A model generated the notes under the pieces. It saw only the letters and a list, made by a program, of their open reading frames with translations, ran no database searches and was not told the DNA's origin. The translations under genes were made by a program, and so were the position numbers. Shown in pieces: positions 3,001-41,917 of a stretch of 64,000 nt of DNA; positions within the stretch are counted from its first letter, which is position 1; every line of letters starts with the position of its first letter. Source of the DNA: Dimorphilus gyrociliatus (Eukaryota > Animalia > Annelida); assembly GCA_904063045.1 (NCBI GenBank), contig CAJFCJ010000019.1, positions 2,982,684 to 3,046,683 of the forward strand. The letters are read 5' to 3'.

Positions 3001-6000
3001 GGAGTAGAATACATAATCAAAATCTTATAACATATACACAAAACGAATAGAGGACGAAAAGGACAACGATTAATTATTATATTTATAAATTTGAATAAGT
3101 AGATGCTTTCATCACATAGAATATACTTTTGCGATATATTATACTTTTAAAAATGTATGCTAATCAATTGCGACAGTATTGTCCTTTTTCTAAATGAAAA
3201 CGTTGAAAAATCATACTGGAAAATTTACGGCAAAATAATTCAATACTAAATTCATCAATATGAATAAATGAAAGGTAATAAAATGCAATTGCAATGTCAG
3301 CTGTTTACTTAGGAAAAAATAGAGGCTTATCCTTACAAAATCAGATTAATAAACAGTAAAAAAATGTGTTGAAAATCCCCCATCCTTCAGCTTAAAGCTA
3401 AAAGTAACCATCCTCTTCAGTAAACGTTAAATCCGCGATGAGTCATTACGGAAAGAACATGGAAAATCACTAGTACTTCGTTGGGATAGTCTTTGGCTAT
3501 GAAATGACTCTAAGCATTGGCCAATGTTGAGATAGAAAGAAATATTATTACTCCGCATCTGCAAAGTATAGAAGATGGCTTATTCTACACTCTGAAGCTC
3601 TAGTAATTGAAAGAAATAACAGAAAAAACGGATTGAAATATATATGCCTTAAAATTTTACAGTAAATGGTTTCAGAAAATCTTCTTTCGTCGAATACTCG
3701 TATGTTAAACTATTTATTATTGAAAAAACAGGCCAATTAACATATTGTTACTAGGAATAAGTGTCTAATGAACAGGATATGACTTTGTTTTATACGTAGA
3801 ACAAGATTCTTATAATACATTTACTGTATAAAATTTATATATATATATATATAAATACATTTTTTTAATTATTTAATGACTATGGGATATCACTGTTGTC
3901 CTGTAAAATATATATTTTACTCTCTTCTATGTGTCAATTTTCAGATATACTTGAATCTGTGGTAACATATCTCGTAAATCGTTATTGTTTAATTACGTCG
4001 ACCTTCAGTCACTGAATTGAAAGGAGAATACATAATGAACTTAAAATTTGCATACAAGCTTCTCTACGGGTGGAATGTTAGAACTTTGAATAGACACTTT
4101 AGTCCCTGGAAGGTATGATGTATAAAAAAAAATCCCCTTATTTCAATATTCTATATAATTGAAAAAATATTAAATTTAACATTCTTCCACTTTCTATCTA
4201 TTACTTTATTTTTGGAATTTAAAATGTCATACTAGAATATCCTGTATCTAAACAAAGAATCTATAAGTTGATAGATTAGAAAGAAATGACGGCTCACCAG
4301 CAATTTATATCCGAGAATTGGAAGAGCATCTCGTACTGAAGAGGTCGAAAAAATGCGTGTAGGGGATTAAGACGGATTCGAGTATGGCTAGAGGTTAAGA
4401 GAAGTCAACGTCGAAACGTAAATAAAATGCGTATAAAGTATTGATTAATTATCGACTATTTTCACACATTTTTCCCAGGAGTATCGTGGCCGAATATCCA
4501 CTGAAGAATTCCGTGCGTTAACGCGATTTATTTAGTTAGAAAATATATAATAGATATTCTACTTTCTCTTTTCTTCTTTTTCCTATATAACTGACTCAGT
4601 CGCTTATCGCTCAAAGGCAAGACGCACGCAATATGACTTTACAATCTAAGCGGATTAAGGATTTACAGCCAATTATCGCCTCCAACTTGATGTATTACAT
4701 ATAATATATAATAATAATTTATTTATTGGACTAATTTTCAAGATTGCTTAAGACTATTCGACAGATTTGGAATACAGTATGTTAGGACTACCAAATTAAA
4801 GCGATTGAGAAATTTCGTCGAGTTTTATTGTCTTCGTAAACCAATGACTTCGTTTCGTATAACATTTCAGTCCAATGTCTTTAAGTAAATATATAAGACG
4901 TCTGAATTGTCGTCCACCCCTCTTCCATCTCTTTCATTTTTAGAGGATAAATTTTTAGACGCATGCAGGAATCCTTATGTAGCAACGACATCTGCAGAGT
5001 TCTCATATTCGCCATTGTCACAATGTGCTAAAATGCCCTTATAAAAGATTCTCCACTTGTATTCGCTCAATTTGCTTCTTCACCTAATTTTTATATATGT
5101 AAAAAAAAACGCTTTTGCTACTTCTCGTGAAAGAACTAACGTATTTTCTTTTCTTAAGGCCTTTATTTTCTTGGTAACCTATTTTTTCTGTTTTGAAGAG
5201 TTTAATCTTTTTCTTATTGTTTTTATAAAAGGTTTGCATCTATGCAATTAAAAGATATTTTTGATCTAAAAGCATTTCGGGCAACAGTCTTTTCTCCTTC
5301 TTTATTTATTCTACTCTAATAAAAAAGGTATATCATCATTTCCCATTTAGAAAGGGCTAATAAATATAACAGACATAATTTTATGATCGTTCTTACAATT
5401 TACTGATTTGAAAAGCCTTCTGTTTCTAGTTACATTCCTAATAGCACATCCATCATTTAAATCCTTTGATTATCAATCTTCTACTCTCTACAGTTTTATG
5501 TATCAACTCTACCTGGGAAAAAAGAAACAAACCTTGTGTTTTTTGTTGTTCGAAAGTATAGAAATAATTCGACAAAACCCTTTGAAAATATAAAAGTATC
5601 TTTTCAGCAGGCATTCTCTAATTGACAGACTACTCACAGACTATCATACTATTAGCTAGGTGAATTACAGCTATATTTTATGCTATATATACCTGCTCTT
5701 TTATAATTACATCAATATTAGTGATGAGACTTTAATTATCTTAGAGATTCGTTACTTGAAATAATTGCACCAACCCCTTTCACTTGTTGAATAAATTTTT
5801 TTAATAGAACAGAATTCATAACGAACAATCCGGAAGTAATAAATTCAAGTTTTTAAATGATCCCTTTTTTGTTATTAATACAGTGCTTTACCGCTTTTTT
5901 TCTATTAGTAATTGTTACTTATTCTATTACTTTATCGTCTATAAGTAGGTTATCTATATTTTCAAAGTTAAATATACTTATATTTTAGAATTTATCCAAT

Positions 6001-7833: not shown

Positions 7834-10630
7834 ATGAAATCGATCTTCCTCTTCTTCTTTCCCTTTCTTCCCTTTTCCCTTGCTGGGCCTATTCAGCTTC
7901 TCTTCAGCATCAAAGAGGAACTACCCCGAAACTCGGTCGTGGGGAATATTTTGAAAAATTCCACAAGAAATTTCGCGCTTCGCATAATTCCAAAACCAAA
8001 AAGTAATGCAGGACTATTATTCCGGATACATGAGAACGGTGACCTAAGAACAAGATCAAGAATAGACCGAGATGAAATATGCCCTCGACAGGAAAAGTGT
8101 GATATAGAAATGGATATATTCGACAGAACAGTCTTCTATAAAGTCATTGTTGAAATAAAGGATAAGAATGATAATAAGCCAAAATTTACTGAAAACTCAA
8201 CTACATTTTTTGTGTCAGAGGCAACTGGACCCGGATTTTCAATATCATTACCCGCCGCTCAAGATAATGATAGCCCGAAATACGGTATAAAGAAGTATGA
8301 GATTCCTGATCTCCGTAAGAAATACTTTGAATTTACATGGAGAAGGCTAGAGGATGGAACGGATGACCTAAAATTGTTATTAAAGAGAAAATTAGATAGA
8401 GAGAGAAAAGAGAAGTATAATATGGTTCTAAAGGCAATTGATGGTTCAGGTAAAAGTGACAGCTTGAAAATTCTTATAATAGTGACCGATGCTAACGATA
8501 ACATAGCTGTTTTTGAGGACCAGCATTACGAAGGGGAAGTCTTAGAAAACAGCCCTAAAGGTACAAGCGTCCTTCAGGTTATTGCCAGGGACGAAGATTT
8601 GGGACCGAACGCAGAAATTGATTATTTCATTGTTTCTTCCGACTATCTGCCTTTTGAAATAGATGAGTCGGGAGTGATAAAAGTAAAGGGATCCATTGAT
8701 TACGAGGAAAATCATTCTTATGAATTCTCAGTACGAGCTCGAGATAGGGGACCAGATCCGCTATCGAGTATCGCTTCCGTTAAAATTAAAGTTCTAGACG
8801 AAAACGATTGCACACCGAAGATTCATGTTAAAGTAAGTGTAAAATTCCTCTTCGGAGTTGATTGGTTGACACATTAATAATTAATTATTTAGGGAAGAAG
8901 GTATGAATAAGATAAATATAGTATAGAGGGCGAATTAAAGAATTAGGCGAAGAGAATAATTACGTATATAGTATAAATGTATTTTGAGATGAAAGCTGCC
9001 AAGAAATTTGTAACTAAAATAACTTGAATTAACTTATTATTCAAGTTTCTATCTTGTTAATAAATCATTTTCTAGCAAATATTACATCGATTATTAGTTA
9101 ATCTGATAAATTATTAAAACACTATTTTCTCTTTCTTTATAGACCTTACAAGTTGACAATTCCTTTGCAACAATGGAAGAAAATCGGCCCGAGAAGAATT
9201 TTATTGCTTTCGTTACAGTTGAAGATCCCGACTCTGGCAAAGGAGGAGAAGTAGAATGCGACTTAAAAGATAATAAAAGTCATTTCTTATTGAAGAAAAT
9301 AATTCCGAAAGAGTACAAGCTTGTTAATAAATCACCTTTAAACAGAGAAGATCCAAGATTTGATGATAAAGGAGAAATAGGTATCGTTATTCTATGCAAG
9401 GATTTAGGTAAGAATCCAAATATTGGAAGTAGTTTTGTCCTGCTGAAAGTGCTCGATCAAAACGAATCCCCACCAGTCTTCAAAGACAGTGAAGTATTTA
9501 AAGCTATTCAAGAGAATCAAGGTAAAGGAAAACTGCTGGTAGAAATAGAAGCAAACGATCCAGATGGAAATGATCGTAATTTAAGTTTTCGTTTCAAAAA
9601 TAAGCGATTCGAGAAATACTTAGAGTTGAAAGAAGACGGAAATCGTGCTAAAATTTACACTAAAGTTAGCTTGGACCATGAGGAGACTCCGGAATTGCAT
9701 GTGAAAGTAGAAGCTTGTGATCAAGGTGGAAAATGCGACGTATGCACTATACATATTCAGATACAAGATTTAAATGATAATTATCCAGAATTTCGAGAAA
9801 ATTTTTACAATTTCTCAGTTTTAGAAAACCAAAAATCTTCACTTTTTGTCGGAAAAGTCAACGCTTTCGACCGAGATTCTAAAAGCCTAAATGAATTCTG
9901 CCTTAAGTTGAAAGGAGAAAAGGATTATCATTTTAAAATTGATAAAAATGGAACCATTCGAACAGCAAGAAAGCTTGATCGGGAAAAAATTTCAGTATAT
10001 CATTTATCTGTTTATGCTCTTCCTGACACATGCAATTTTTTGCCTACGGCTCCGGGAGTCCGCAAGGCAATTGTGGAGATCTGGATCTTAGACGAGAACG
10101 ATCATTCTCCAGAGTTTAAATGGCCTGCCTCATCCTCTTATACAATATCAGTTAATCCCGATTCGAGGGTTAATAAGGTGGTAGCTAGCCTAGTTGCTTC
10201 CGACAAGGATACTGGATTAAATTCAAAAATTCAGTATGAGCTTTTGTCCGATAAACCAGCAGGATTTTTCCAGTTAAATCCATTCACAGGCGTTGTAAAA
10301 CTAGCCAAAAGCTTAGAAACGTTCGAGAACGGAGCAGTTATCAAGTTTATTGTCAAAGCTTCAGACATGGGAGAAAAGTCTTTATCTTCAGAAGAGAGAA
10401 CTTTAAACTTTATGGTAAATAGGACGTCGTCCGGAGAATTTTTCGGTGAAATATGGAATACATATGTCCTCTGGGTTATTATTGGACTAGGAATCCTTGG
10501 CGCTATTCTTCTTGTTGCTTGTTTTGCGTTAATCAGGAGAGGAAGGAAAAGAAGTGATGAAGTAGACGAAGGATCTCCAGTTAAAGAGAGAATGTTAGCC
10601 GTTAAAGATGTTCATTACGTTCCTAAAGAC
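7834..10630 (+). CDS. Delta-type (non-clustered) protocadherin: signal peptide, 7 cadherin repeats, TM helix, start of cytoplasmic tail. Coding exons 7834-8832 and 9143-10630; 3' end lies further downstream
   Basis: ATG at 7834 then hydrophobic MKSIFLFFFPFLPFSLAG. Repeated DxNDN/LDRE/DxD cadherin motifs. EC1 has the protocadherin IDRDEIC-x5-C signature. GTAAGT donor at 8833 and TTTATAG acceptor at 9142 join in phase 0. TM segment WVIIGLGILGAILLVACFALI; GTAAGT donor at 10631. Confidence 0.95.
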
Positions 10631-37820: not shown

Positions 37821-38118
37821 TTACTTTTTTTTCTTCTTTTTCCCCTTCTTTGGAGCTTCAGGCCAGGCAAATCCCCGATACTCAAGAGCGTCTACAGCGT
37901 TGTGAGCACAATAATAAATCTGCGTTAAGGCATGCTCATTCATTTCCGCCGAAGGTAATTTGGCAGGAGCTGATTTTGGGGCAGCTCTTTTCTTGGCTGA
38001 TTTCTTGCCACTCTTTTTACCCGATTTTGTACTATGAGCTCTTTTAGTTTTTGCTGATTTCTTTGGCTATTGAAATGATGAAATCAAAAATATACCTTAA
38101 AATTTAAATACAAACCAT
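37821..38118 (-). CDS. SMKR1: Small lysine-rich protein 1 homolog, 82 aa. ATG-only first coding exon 38118-38116, 49-nt intron, exon 38066-37821 (absent from ORF track)
   Basis: M-PKKSAKTKRAHSTKSGKKSGKK...ALTQIYYCAHNAVDALEYRGFAWPEAPKKGKKKKKK* matches the SMKR1 YYxAHNxxDxLxxRGFxWPxAPK motif. ATG|GTTTG...CAATAG splice joins in phase 0. Confidence 0.85.
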
Positions 38119-38362
38119 ATTTGATATCGCTCTTAAGTTGATTAAATATAGTCTACTGTATGTTCATATGGCCATATTGATTGTCGTCAAGTAAATGGTT
38201 ATTGATCTCACGATTACTTTTAATATTTTCGTATTATACACTGCAGCTATTTAAAACATTGTTGAAGTGTTTTTGATAGTGTATTATCAACATTAATAAG
38301 CACTTCACTTAACAAGTTCAAAAGTTGCAAATTTTCGTGACATCTACAGTAACTATTCTTGA

Positions 38363-39578
38363 TTAATGCTTCCAGCCGACATCGTGCCCTCCAGCCATTT
38401 GAGGTTCTAGAAATCCTCTGAAGGATTTTCCATCATGGGTCCATCGAGCTCCATATCCATTTTCTTGTCGTACTTCACAGATGATAACATCATGCTAATA
38501 ATGTTAATAGAAAGAGTAATTTCAATTCGTCAGAATACAATTAAAAGTTACCGGAAGCCAGTGAATATTTATCCATGTTGAATTGTCTAGTATTTTTCCA
38601 AGTATTTTAAAGGCATGTTCGTTTTTATCAATCTCTCCTGAAAAAATTGACTGAATGAGTACAAAATGATAAGAATTTTAGGACACTTACTTCCTTTGCA
38701 TTTACCCCACCAGCCATCAGTTTCATCTCTATGGCAATGTTTTGCTAAAGCCCTTGCTCCTACAGTCAGAATAGACCCTGGGCTGAAAATCAAGCTGATG
38801 AAAGTAAAATTAAAAAATATTTTTCTAATTACTTATTGAGTTGTTGGAAAGTATCTTCTAGGAGTTTCCTTGGTGGTGGAAAAATGTCTTTACTCCCCAC
38901 TGTCTTTCTCACACCTAATAGATCCAAAATTCCACGTTTTCCTAATATCTAATAAAAGAAATTACAAAGGAAATAGGAATATTTCTCAAAAAATACCATT
39001 AGCATTTTCCTAACAGAAAAATTTTGTTCAGCTTTGGATGAATGATCCCAAAGTGTTTGAATTCCATCTAGCAAATCAGTAATTTTTTTGAAGTTGAATG
39101 ATCTTTCTTCCAAGTATTCTTTCTCATCCAATAAATCATAATTCGGCAGCTCCATAACTGGAGACTCTCTTTTTTAAAAATTAAAACAATTAATTTTTCA
39201 ACTCTTTAAAAAAATATATTTATATAAATCAAACTTTAACAGATTTTAAGTAAAATTTGCCAATGCAAATATAAACTAGCAAACTAAGAGTACAGTATAT
39301 TTACTTATTTTGAATCCATCTATCAAGCATTACACCTATTGTCTTATAAAGAGGTCTTGTTGGATAGCCGAAAATTCCTGATCTGGTAGTTTCTTCGGAA
39401 AATTCTTCAGATAATAACTCGTTAATATCTTCAGTGGGCAGGAATTTATCATTTCTCTTCAGTTCCTCCGATAAAACCTAGTGTTGAAATAGCTTCATAA
39501 TAAAGGCTACTTTATACTTTTATAAGTTTTATATCAAATGCTAACCTCTTTCACCATATCAACAAAGCTAGTCTCCAT
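38363..39578 (-). CDS. Uncharacterised multi-exon protein with C-terminal LTVGARALAKH...WINIH...GYGARW...FRGFLEP...GWKH domain
   Basis: Hand-spliced GT-AG exons give METSFVDMVKE-VLSEELKRND...-MELPNYDLL...-ILGKRGILDLLGVRKTVGSKDIFPPPRKLLEDTF...-PGSILTVGARALAKHCHRDETDGWWGKCKG-REIDKNEHAFKILGKILDNSTWINIHWLP-HDVIICEVRQENGYGARWTHDGKSFRGFLEPQMAGGHDVGWKH*. The acceptor near 39170 is uncertain. Confidence 0.85.
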
Positions 39579-39788
39579 TTTGTCTTTTGCTAAATTGCCG
39601 CAGAGTCGACTTATTATACTACCTAAAAGTGATGAAATTTAGATTTTTCTGGAAAATTACACAATATTCCTCATAGATTTGTAAAAAATGCGTTTGAGAT
39701 GAGTTTTTCTAAATCGGAAGGCGAACAAGAATTTCGCGATTTTAGGTAATTTCCTGAACTCTTACCAGTTTTTTGTGCAAATTTGGTT

Positions 39789-40196
39789 ATGGCGCCAAAG
39801 AGGAAAAGAGGTCTCAAGACAAAATCAACTGAAGAAGTCGAAGATCTCGCTCATAATAACCAGTCAGTAGAAAGAGATGACTCTTTAGCAAAGAAGAAAA
39901 AAGTCGACGGTACAATAACAGTGTTAATAGAGCATTGCAAATCTTGACGGGTGTATGGTCGCAAAGCGGCCGCCATTATAGAGTTTTTAAGAGCTGATGA
40001 AGACTTAAGTATTGATGAGGTATTAATAAATCAGGAAAAACCCAAACGAGGAGCTTTTGAAATTTCTATTCAAGACTCGGAAGGAAATACCCATAATGTT
40101 TGGACTGGGTTGAAGAAAGGACCTCCCAGAAAGCTAAAGTTTCCTGAACCCGAAATAGTTCTAAATGAAATTAAAACATTGCTCGAGGGCAAGTAA
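39789..40196 (+). CDS. SELENOH: Selenoprotein H, intronless, 135 aa, with in-frame UGA = Sec at 39945-39947 (CKSU redox motif)
   Basis: ATG at 39789 reads MAPKRKRG...VLIEHCKS-TGA-RVYGRKAAAI...KPKRGAFEI...VWTGLKKGPPRKLKFPEPEIV, matching SELENOH. SECIS element 30 nt after the TAA. Confidence 0.96.
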
Positions 40197-40225: not shown

Positions 40226-40299
40226 TGTCTTTTTGAATTTATGACGGTTTAAAGTGAAAGCATAAGAAGCTTTTTACCTGATAGTGCTTCATAAAGACA
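40226..40299 (+). promoter_or_regulatory. SECIS element in the SELENOH 3' UTR
   Basis: Helix I TGTCTTT-T-TGAA / TTCA-T-AAAGACA. Core ATGA (40241-44) opposite TGAT (40279-82). Helix II GGTTTAAAGT / GCTTTTTACC (8 of 10 paired). Apical AAA at 40257-59. Confidence 0.9.
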
Positions 40300-40730: not shown

Positions 40731-41917
40731 TTAACAATTTGCTAGGGCTACTGGTCTTTTTAAAACAAATAAACCATCTTTTGTATGGATGGGATTCCCT
40801 GAAGTAACATAATGCCTAATTAAATGACTGATGGAATTGAATGCCTGTGTTTTTGTGCGAACTATTCCATTCGGGTCTACGAGAAGAAGGTGGCGTACTG
40901 TGTGATTATGTTTTCCGCTTAATACGTACTGACCAATGCAATTTGAAGTTAATCTAACGAGAAAATCCCCATCTTCTTTTAAAAGCTCCTCTGCTTGACT
41001 TCTTGAAATGTTTCCATGAAACCACTCTTCATTTGTAGGATCCCCGGCACCAATGCAGCCTTCGAGTGTAAAAGGCTCCATCCCAAAGTCATCTGTTGAA
41101 TTATGAACTACCTCAGTTGGTGTTTCAGTTGGCTTATGATCGTTATTATCGTTTCCTTTATCTTCGTCAACTTCGTTAGTGAGAGGCGGTGCACTTGGTT
41201 CAGCAACGTAGCAATTACCGACAGCCCTAGAATCGATCATAGCTAAACCTAGAAACTGTTTGTATCGTAATTCGAAAGCCTGACCAAGGGTATTTAATAT
41301 ATCATGAGATGATTTGTTTCCACATTCTAAAATGTGACAGAATCGCCCCCGAATAACGTCTTTGGATACAATTGTCACAAAGTCTAAATCATTATCTCCA
41401 CTTGATGTAAATGATACAGAATTTAAAGGGTATAAACCTATAGATCTCTGATTATCCAAAGATATTAGTTGGATAGTTTCAGTATCTATTATTACTTGAC
41501 AATTACTTCCTGCATTTGTCATATCAGGGGTATCTTTGATTATATCAGTTAAACTTTTGTCAATTTTTTTCGTACTTGATGATCTCATACCGGCCGCAGA
41601 AGTTACTATGATTGTGCACTGTCTAAAGTTTTAGTGAATGCTTAGCTTTGATTAAGAGAAAAACTATTCCCTATGCTTACTTTGTCACAGCTTTTCGAGT
41701 CTCAAATGACATTGATCGCATGCTCTGAGTAATTTCCAAACACCCCATGTACTTAAAAATAGTTAAATTCAATATTTATTTCAATATTTACACCAATTTC
41801 ACTTACTCTAACTGGATATGACACTCCATTGCCAGGTAAGAGCTGATGATCTTGATGTAGCCAACCTCCTATTGGCTTATTTCTAAAACTACCATCATCG
41901 TTCCACTGATTTGACAT
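40731..41917 (-). CDS. SHC1: SHC adaptor (PTB-CH1-SH2), 357 aa. Exons 41917-41807, 41751-41681, 41622-40731
   Basis: FRNKPIGGWLH, VSYPVRYMGCLEITQSMR, CHILEC, TLGQAFELRYKQFL, WFHGNISR, GDFLVR, HLLLVDPNGIVRT. Pre-duplication invertebrate SHC; the symbol denotes the family. Confidence 0.93.

Follow-up and report, generated by a model that had tools for sequence, protein, structure and literature searches.

What does a ribonuclease-like domain known from the tips of bacterial toxins do in an ordinary animal gene? This question is raised by the minus-strand locus 38363-39578 in a 64,000-nucleotide (nt) stretch of the genome of the annelid Dimorphilus gyrociliatus (contig CAJFCJ010000019.1, positions 2,982,684 to 3,046,683 of the forward strand), which is referred to as the window. 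A first-pass annotation of the window had described the locus as an uncharacterised, intron-bearing gene with a C-terminal RNase domain like that of polymorphic toxins, lying head-to-head with the selenoprotein gene SELENOH. With 33% GC, the window is AT-rich. When 38300-39700 was translated in six frames and the splice sites were inspected, seven exons were recognised on the minus strand (Table 1), separated by six introns of 48-136 bp which all follow the GT-AG rule. The coding sequence of 804 nt comprises 267 codons and the stop codon at 38363-38365. The peptide strings quoted in the first-pass annotation (LTVGARALAKHCHR, GWWG, KNEHAFKILGKILDNSTWINIH, EVRQENGYGARWTHDGKSFRGFLEP and GWKH) were all found in exons 5-7. 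The product was identified as the database protein P0220 (DgyrCDS12044, D. gyrociliatus, 267 amino acids (aa)). All seven exons are 100% identical to it, the self-score of each exon was reached with P0220 too, and at the three split codons (K, N, R) its residues are those expected from the junctions. Searches with the window sequence were run exon by exon, and P0220 was used for full-length searches.

One CdiA-CT toxin, injected by Pseudomonas into rival cells, cuts tRNA. When a profile built from 44 full-length members of the P0220 family was searched against the sequences of the PDB, one structure was matched, 6D7Y chain A (E 7e-7), and a profile of 66 members gave an E-value of 3.9e-7 against the same chain, with profile matches covering residues 16-95 of its 96 residues. 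P0220 as a single sequence reached only E 0.04, but in a register identical to that of the profile alignment, and phmmer with exon 7 alone had no match in the PDB, so the search depended on the full-length family profile. 6D7Y represents the toxic tip at the C-terminus of CdiA from P. aeruginosa PABL017, a tRNase with a BECR fold (barnase/EndoU/colicin/RelE) that is closest to colicin D. The structural evidence agrees with this match. An AlphaFold2 model of P0220 was obtained with a predicted local distance difference test score (pLDDT) of 94.5 and a predicted template modelling score (pTM) of 0.92, and 6d7y_A superposed on its residues 157-254 with Z 12.8, a root mean square deviation of 1.8 Å, 92 of 92 residues aligned and 33% identity; Foldseek gave a template modelling score (TM) of 0.85, a probability of 1.00 and E 5.7e-4 for the same pair. 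Colicin D followed (5znm_B, Z 7.0; 1tfk_A, Z 5.8), and the toxins 8ey4, 6cp9 and 5i4q of contact-dependent inhibition (CDI) systems, the toxin-antitoxin entry 7vd7 and BrnT were matched with Z 3.8-5.2. The secondary structure of the RNase domain in the model (helices at 172-183 and 197-213, strands at 215-223, 227-234, 239-243 and 249-253) shows the BECR pattern of an N-terminal helix followed by a four-stranded meander, and the top structural matches were all BECR toxins. The model of a kin protein, P0003 (pLDDT 92.2, pTM 0.91), gave the same picture in its structural matches. Hence, residues 157-254 are a true homologue of the CdiA-CT (PABL017) tRNase tip, and the likeness to BECR-type RNase toxins claimed in the first-pass annotation was borne out by the profile match, the AlphaFold model and Foldseek alike.

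His3372 is the catalytic histidine of the PABL017 CdiA-CT (PMC9086364, PMC12791740); its exchange in H3372A yields a catalytically null protein, and the toxin also cleaves eukaryotic tRNAs (PMC12791740). In the HMMER alignment the toxin segment ...ALSKHAGRH... stands against ...ARALAKHCHR... of the family, and H180 of P0220 aligns with His3372, which is the His of SKH at index 25 of the chain (numbered 3352-3443). Conservation was then counted over 341 full-domain family representatives. K179, H180 and R241 are present in all of them and R183, E231 and R233 in 340, whereas H221 (97%), H261 (96%) and the C-terminal H267 (98%) are slightly less constant. Sixteen positions are common to the family and a standalone bacterial homologue (L170, R175, A176, K179, H180, R183, G195, N201, E231, G237, G239, R241, F249, G251, F252 and E254). 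The putative catalytic residues, for which the first-pass annotation had proposed a conservation check, are thus clearly conserved, in 340 or 341 of the 341 proteins.

How widely the domain occurs was already evident from its last exon. phmmer with the 43 aa of exon 7 against 1.84 billion representatives found 356 proteins at E<=1e-3 and 31 at E<=1e-10, a result far beyond chance, and the proteins, of 250-370 aa, nearly always carried the match at their very C-terminal end. The named members are all annotated as 'hypothetical' or 'uncharacterized' and have no Pfam domain. Pfam holds no family for the conserved domain in the six longer exons, in ten full-length relatives or in P0220, the sole exception among the relatives being an ASCH domain in two algal members; NCBIfam contained nothing meaningful for the domain, and Rfam at the gathering threshold had no match in the whole window. 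A weak NCBIfam match connects residues 21-85 of P0102 with the C-terminal part of PcrP/PA2803 (NF053741; E 0.001, 19 bits), which may be due to chance or to a distant Pseudomonas relative. Among animals, members were found in molluscs, annelids, nemerteans, a brachiopod, a flatworm (Macrostomum), echinoderms, a hemichordate, cnidarians and sponges, with ~45-55% identity between phyla. Other opisthokonts and amoebae contribute members from a choanoflagellate, Capsaspora, Dictyostelium, chytrids and Mucoromycota, and further eukaryotic members come from oomycetes, brown algae, Vitrella, Palpitomonas, ferns, angiosperms and streptophyte algae. The phyletic profile across animals that the first-pass annotation had asked for therefore extends well beyond them. 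Names of chordates, arthropods and nematodes were absent from three hit lists, one of which came from an echinoderm query, and this suggests that the family was lost in these groups. With no member seen from chordates, arthropods, nematodes or Dikarya fungi, the family apparently escaped study. Several BECR clades in an inventory of polymorphic toxins from 2012 include some members from eukaryotes, such as Ntox49, which occurs in stramenopiles and plants (PMC3482391). The BECR families Ntox49, Ntox35 and Ntox41 were considered as possible names, but none of the Pfam toxin models matched and no assignment was made. In sum, the RNase fold is one known from toxins, and the family represents an uncharacterised variant of it in eukaryotes.

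The eukaryotic proteins consist of more than the toxin domain. Residues 1 to ~136 of P0220 are all-helical, and structure searches with the whole model matched only generic helical bundles in this part (Z <5). A linker, LLGxRKTVGS..PPP, follows, in which T142 is invariant and G144 and P150 are near-invariant in the family alignment. The RNase domain is extended by a 13-residue tail, PQMxxGHxxGW[KR]H (residues 255-267, with H261, W265 and H267 encoded in exon 7), which was found in eukaryotic proteins only; the bacterial toxins end at or just after F.GF. The high pTM indicates that the two halves of the protein pack as one unit in the model. The proteins of Mesostigma (P0080), Closterium (P0085) and Klebsormidium (P0394) have an inserted ASCH domain (PF04266), which separates the N-terminal region from the linker and C-terminal domain, and a structure search of the ESM Atlas matched the whole of P0220 (residues 1-267) to a streptophyte ASCH cluster with TM 0.90. 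Exon 7 as a query of the ESM Atlas was uninformative. The resemblance to the C-terminal domain of plant 'RNA-binding ASCH domain' proteins noted in the first-pass annotation thus extends to the whole architecture, and its statement that the Dimorphilus gene itself has no ASCH domain holds, as PF04266 matched neither P0220 nor the exons of the window. In the same Atlas, the feature-ranked match 3 was a cluster of 119 proteins, mostly from Bacteroidota and ~221 aa long, that scored 0.94 against the whole of P0220; it may be a lead to bacterial proteins which share more than the toxin domain with P0220.

From gene structure, homology, fold, residue conservation and phyletic spread we infer the following model, in which catalysis, substrate and the role of the N-terminal domain are predictions; the part in RNA quality control or defence suggested in the first-pass annotation would likewise be one. 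We consider it likely that the gene product is an active cellular endoribonuclease with a CdiA-CT-type domain and with tRNA as the likeliest substrate. It would be an intracellular protein of 267 aa from an old eukaryotic family, composed of a helical N-terminus, the linker RKTVGS..PPP, the BECR RNase domain (157-254) and the His/Trp-rich tail (255-267). Catalysis would be independent of metals, with H180, the counterpart of His3372, acting as general base and K179, R183, E231, R233 and R241 binding and polarising the scissile phosphate. The tightly packed N-terminal domain, together with the inserted ASCH domain in plants, would stand in for an immunity protein and restrict or direct the access of substrates; this role is proposed because the high pTM indicates that both halves form one unit. 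The insertion of ASCH, a PUA-like domain, in streptophytes points to RNA as the substrate.

Several points weigh against this model. A fold and conserved residues do not suffice to prove nuclease activity or to show which substrate is cut. Only the eukaryotic proteins have R233, W242, H221 and the His-rich tail, so their chemistry may not be that of the toxin. A tRNase that is not kept in check would damage the cell, and we know of no inhibitor partner. Furthermore, full-text literature searches with the plant protein name, the gene identifiers and BECR plus ASCH returned no functional study of the family, only gene lists.

Two alternative readings have to be weighed. The RNase could be active but kept in reserve as a stress or defence effector, such as an antiviral or anti-parasite 'suicide' tRNase, and not serve as a housekeeping enzyme. 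In favour of this, the closest relative that has been characterised is a toxin that arrests growth, a member from Phytophthora bears the label 'sporangia induced', and the family is missing from several large lineages, as is often the case for dispensable or conflict-related genes. However, the gene is single-copy, identity among animal phyla amounts to ~45-55%, the architecture is invariant from end to end, lineage-specific expansions or the rapid evolution typical of defence genes were not observed, and the promoter region is common with a trafficking gene in three phyla. Therefore, we regard a defence role as unlikely. The other alternative is a pseudo-enzyme, in which the toxin fold would have been kept as a non-catalytic RNA- or protein-binding module with an adaptor role. 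Pseudo-enzymes usually lose their catalytic residues, but here 340-341 of 341 representatives, from lineages that split >1 billion years ago, have retained the catalytic His together with the Lys, Arg and Glu that accompany it. This makes a non-catalytic protein rather improbable, although the eukaryote-specific N-terminal domain, linker and C-terminal tail suggest new functions and the functional literature on the family yielded nothing beyond gene lists. An active endoribonuclease thus remains our preferred reading.

The first-pass annotation had also proposed that the gene may be co-transcribed with SELENOH through a divergent promoter. The head-to-head arrangement with a spacing of ~210 bp was found as described, the two ATGs being 210 bp apart (Table 1). 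The identification of the neighbour as SELENOH is reasonable. It rests on the CKSU motif, a match to Rdx (PF10262) just below threshold (E 7.9e-4, 20 bits against a cut-off of 22.6) and a candidate selenocysteine insertion sequence (SECIS) that begins 35 nt past the stop codon and is probably genuine, the selenoprotein gene being a divergent invertebrate one; in addition, the protein resembles human SELENOH (WTGxKKGPPRKLKFPEP). The linkage was surveyed in five other genomes (Capitella, Lingula, Lottia, Stylophora and Ephydatia). In none of the five do the gene tables place SELENOH less than 10 kb from the orthologue, and tblastn of two SELENOH peptide pieces against the Capitella and Lingula loci gave no match. 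The orthologue is instead paired head-to-head with a tepsin-like gene in three genomes and with THOC7 in Stylophora, and in the compact Dimorphilus genome of 77.9 Mb close neighbours are expected. The idea that the two genes form a functional, co-regulated pair, for which the divergent 210-bp interval speaks, is thus very unlikely, and the adjacency is most likely incidental to the compact genome. Among the surveyed pairings the tepsin-like one is the conserved one, and it may represent an ancient bidirectional gene pair of animals. When the window was searched by tblastx with the tepsin-like genes of Capitella and Lingula, no match was obtained, nor did a search of the Dimorphilus genome with PF25827 give one, but in the latter the controls were equally silent. 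Two further coding regions lie close by, a small Lys-rich one and one for an SHC-type adaptor (Table 1).

Table 1 Features of the window, partners of the orthologue in other genomes and bacterial relatives of the RNase domain. Positions without a locus name are those of the window; those of loci are preceded by the locus name. In L005, L006 and L009 the orthologue is at 10001 and the tepsin-like gene lies upstream. ORF, open reading frame; Sec, selenocysteine; UTR, untranslated region.
Feature	Position	Strand	Description
Exon 1	39546-39578	-	Met1-Glu11; ATG at 39576-39578; matches the N-terminus of P0220 exactly
Exon 2	39305-39477	-	N-terminal helical domain; conserved GYPxRPLY...W motif (family consensus)
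Exon 3	38997-39168	-	N-terminal helical domain; LPxYxLLDEKxY motif, long helices (model secondary structure)
Exon 4	38833-38948	-	Eukaryote-specific linker LGKRGxLDLLGxRKTVGS..PPP and start of the RNase domain (~residue 157)
Exon 5	38691-38782	-	First helix of the RNase domain, LTVGARALAKHCHR; K179, H180 (codon 38737-38739), R183
Exon 6	38552-38637	-	Second helix and first strand of the RNase domain; N201, W217, N219, H221
Exon 7	38366-38494	-	Strands 2-4 with E231, R233, GYGxRW (R241) and FRGFLEP; then tail PQMxxGHxxGW[KR]H
Lys-rich coding region	37821-38070	-	Small, ends ...YYCAHNAVDALEYRGFAWPEAPKKGKKKKKK; just downstream of the RNase-domain gene on the same strand
Interval between divergent start codons	39579-39788		210 bp; putative bidirectional promoter and both 5' UTRs
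SELENOH	39789-40196	+	Single exon; in-frame TGA (Sec) at 39945-39947 within CKSU motif
Candidate SECIS of SELENOH	40231-40294	+	RF00031 (SECIS_1), full-length match, 20.7 bits against a gathering score of 35, E 0.24
285-aa ORF, SHC-type adaptor	40731-41588	-	Tail-to-tail with SELENOH; PID/PTB (E 1.4e-15) and SH2 (E 7.7e-19)
Partner in Capitella	L005:5431-8430	-	ENTH + TVHS-like (PF01417 + PF25827, tepsin-type) gene, head-to-head, 1.6 kb
Partner in Lingula	L006:1322-9786	-	ENTH + TVHS-like (tepsin-type) gene, head-to-head, 215 bp
Partner in Ephydatia (sponge)	L009:3772-9911	-	ENTH + TVHS-like (tepsin-type) gene, head-to-head, 90 bp
Partner in Stylophora			THOC7, head-to-head, ~100 bp; orthologue at L008:10001-10804
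Partner in Lottia			No informative head-to-head partner
Bacterial relative L011	L011:1465-1985		Standalone ORF of 101 aa; 70-aa ORF without family 2 nt downstream
Bacterial relatives L012, L014			Contig-edge fragments
Bacterial relative G632			Copy with one in-frame TAG
Bacterial relative L016 (G623)			End of a 3669-aa open frame with PT-VENN pre-toxin domain (E 3.8e-20); a CdiA

Bacterial relatives of the domain were also sought. Profile searches of two samples of ~400 Pseudomonadota genomes each matched 3-4 genomes per sample, showing that relatives are real but rare (Table 1). One of them closes a CdiA with a PT-VENN domain. Another, L011, sits between dapD and a glycosyltransferase gene, and from its arrangement with a second small ORF the pair looks like a free toxin/immunity cassette. 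The first-pass annotation had spoken of a 'widespread bacterial Rhs/CDI toxin tip'; the CDI part of this stands, with 6D7Y and the PT-VENN example, but 'widespread' does not fit the 3-4 genomes of ~400, and no Rhs protein was seen in the samples. A scan of bacterial and archaeal genomes with patterns derived from the eukaryotic proteins also returned four loci on contigs of metagenome-assembled genomes (MAGs) filed under Gammaproteobacteria, Planctomycetaceae, Stappiaceae and 'bacterium' (L001-L004: CAZYYU010000171.1, CAVPPT010000007.1, OZ219972.1 and CBDBZY010000007.1). These were rejected as bacterial because of their eukaryotic features: between them they show the full eukaryotic architecture, an eIF3J-like neighbour (L002) and an exon/intron structure (L003 and L004), and they are probably eukaryotic DNA mis-binned into species-representative MAGs. 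In a quick maximum-likelihood tree of the domain, in which 6D7Y and G632 (with its stop codon) were left out, 4 bacterial and 71 eukaryotic rows were separated by one long branch (length 2.6; support of 98 in the Shimodaira-Hasegawa-like approximate likelihood ratio test, SH-aLRT), which speaks against a recent transfer, whether from bacteria or to them. That the gene was recently acquired from bacteria by horizontal transfer, or that the assembly is contaminated with bacterial DNA, as the bacterial origin of the closest solved structure and the close copies on the four MAG contigs might have suggested, is refuted by the six spliceosomal introns and the orthologues across eukaryotic supergroups. 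The gene is single-copy in the Dimorphilus assembly and has ordinary animal neighbours, so the first-pass annotation was right to call it a resident nuclear gene. Introns are not a constant feature of the family, as the orthologue of the coral Stylophora is intronless and encodes 267 aa in 804 nt, versus six introns in Dimorphilus.

Taking domain, spread and neighbourhood together, we tentatively propose a previously unrecognised family of eukaryotic endoribonucleases, probably as old as the last eukaryotic common ancestor, that would act most likely on tRNA with the domain of a bacterial tRNase toxin, would be controlled in cis by the N-terminal helical domain instead of an immunity protein, and would be anciently paired with a tepsin-like gene in several animal phyla; we hold this composite statement with less confidence than that of an active enzyme. 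The regulated cleavage of tRNA and other RNAs in eukaryotes is ascribed to few enzymes: angiogenin/RNase A, RNase T2, SLFN proteins, EndoU and the splicing endonuclease. If the proposal is true, a further near-universally conserved nuclease family with ~400 cluster representatives and invariant active-site residues would be added, opening an unexplored route to tRNA fragments or RNA surveillance in plants, protists and most marine animals. The family would also offer a clear example of a small RNase domain with two uses, as a weapon in bacteria and as a resident enzyme in eukaryotes, which raises the question of how a eukaryotic cell keeps such an RNase harmless. Since the family is carried by tractable organisms such as Dictyostelium (DDB_G0284457), plants (in the ASCH-bearing form), Nematostella and sea urchins, direct tests are possible.

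Among known systems, EndoU/XendoU is a precedent for eukaryotes having an RNase fold of the BECR toxin type in a resident enzyme (PMC3482391), but it belongs to another BECR clade, has a duplicated BECR unit and a His-His-Lys triad, and was not among the structural matches of the P0220 or P0003 models. With the colicin D tRNase (5ZNM, 1TFK, 1V74; Tox-ColD) the Dimorphilus protein shares the BECR core of helix and four strands and a Lys-His pair on the N-terminal helix, but the identity is 5-8% and P0220 had no Pfam hit at E<=1. Of the Tox-ColD motifs [KH]K, Hxx[ED], [ST] and [TS]xxK (PMC3482391), Hxx[ED] and [TS]xxK are not present as such in the Dimorphilus protein, which reads KHxxR. The streptophyte ASCH proteins belong to the same family and have the same N-terminal helical region, the RxTxGS..PP linker and an RNase domain ending in W[RK]H, and differ from the Dimorphilus protein by the inserted ASCH domain (PF04266). 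Features of polymorphic toxin systems are seen in the bacterial relatives, namely PT-VENN in L016 and the downstream 70-aa ORF in L011, but not in the Dimorphilus gene: P0220, with 267 aa and no Pfam family, is not part of a large secreted carrier with FHA/Rhs repeats or PT-VENN, and in the window no cognate immunity gene lies immediately downstream, while the neighbours vary between species. The closest system is the CdiA-CT of PABL017, whose whole toxin domain of 92 residues superposes and has the catalytic His and the Lys, Arg and Glu near it as well as G.G.R and F.GF in common with the Dimorphilus protein. The latter, however, is not the tip of a giant secreted protein with a PT-VENN or FHA delivery region, and the toxin in turn lacks the helical N-terminal region of ~155 residues and the His/Trp tail of 13 residues. 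Unlike CdiA-CT, the Dimorphilus protein is encoded by an intron-bearing, single-copy gene of a family that is vertically inherited in eukaryotes.

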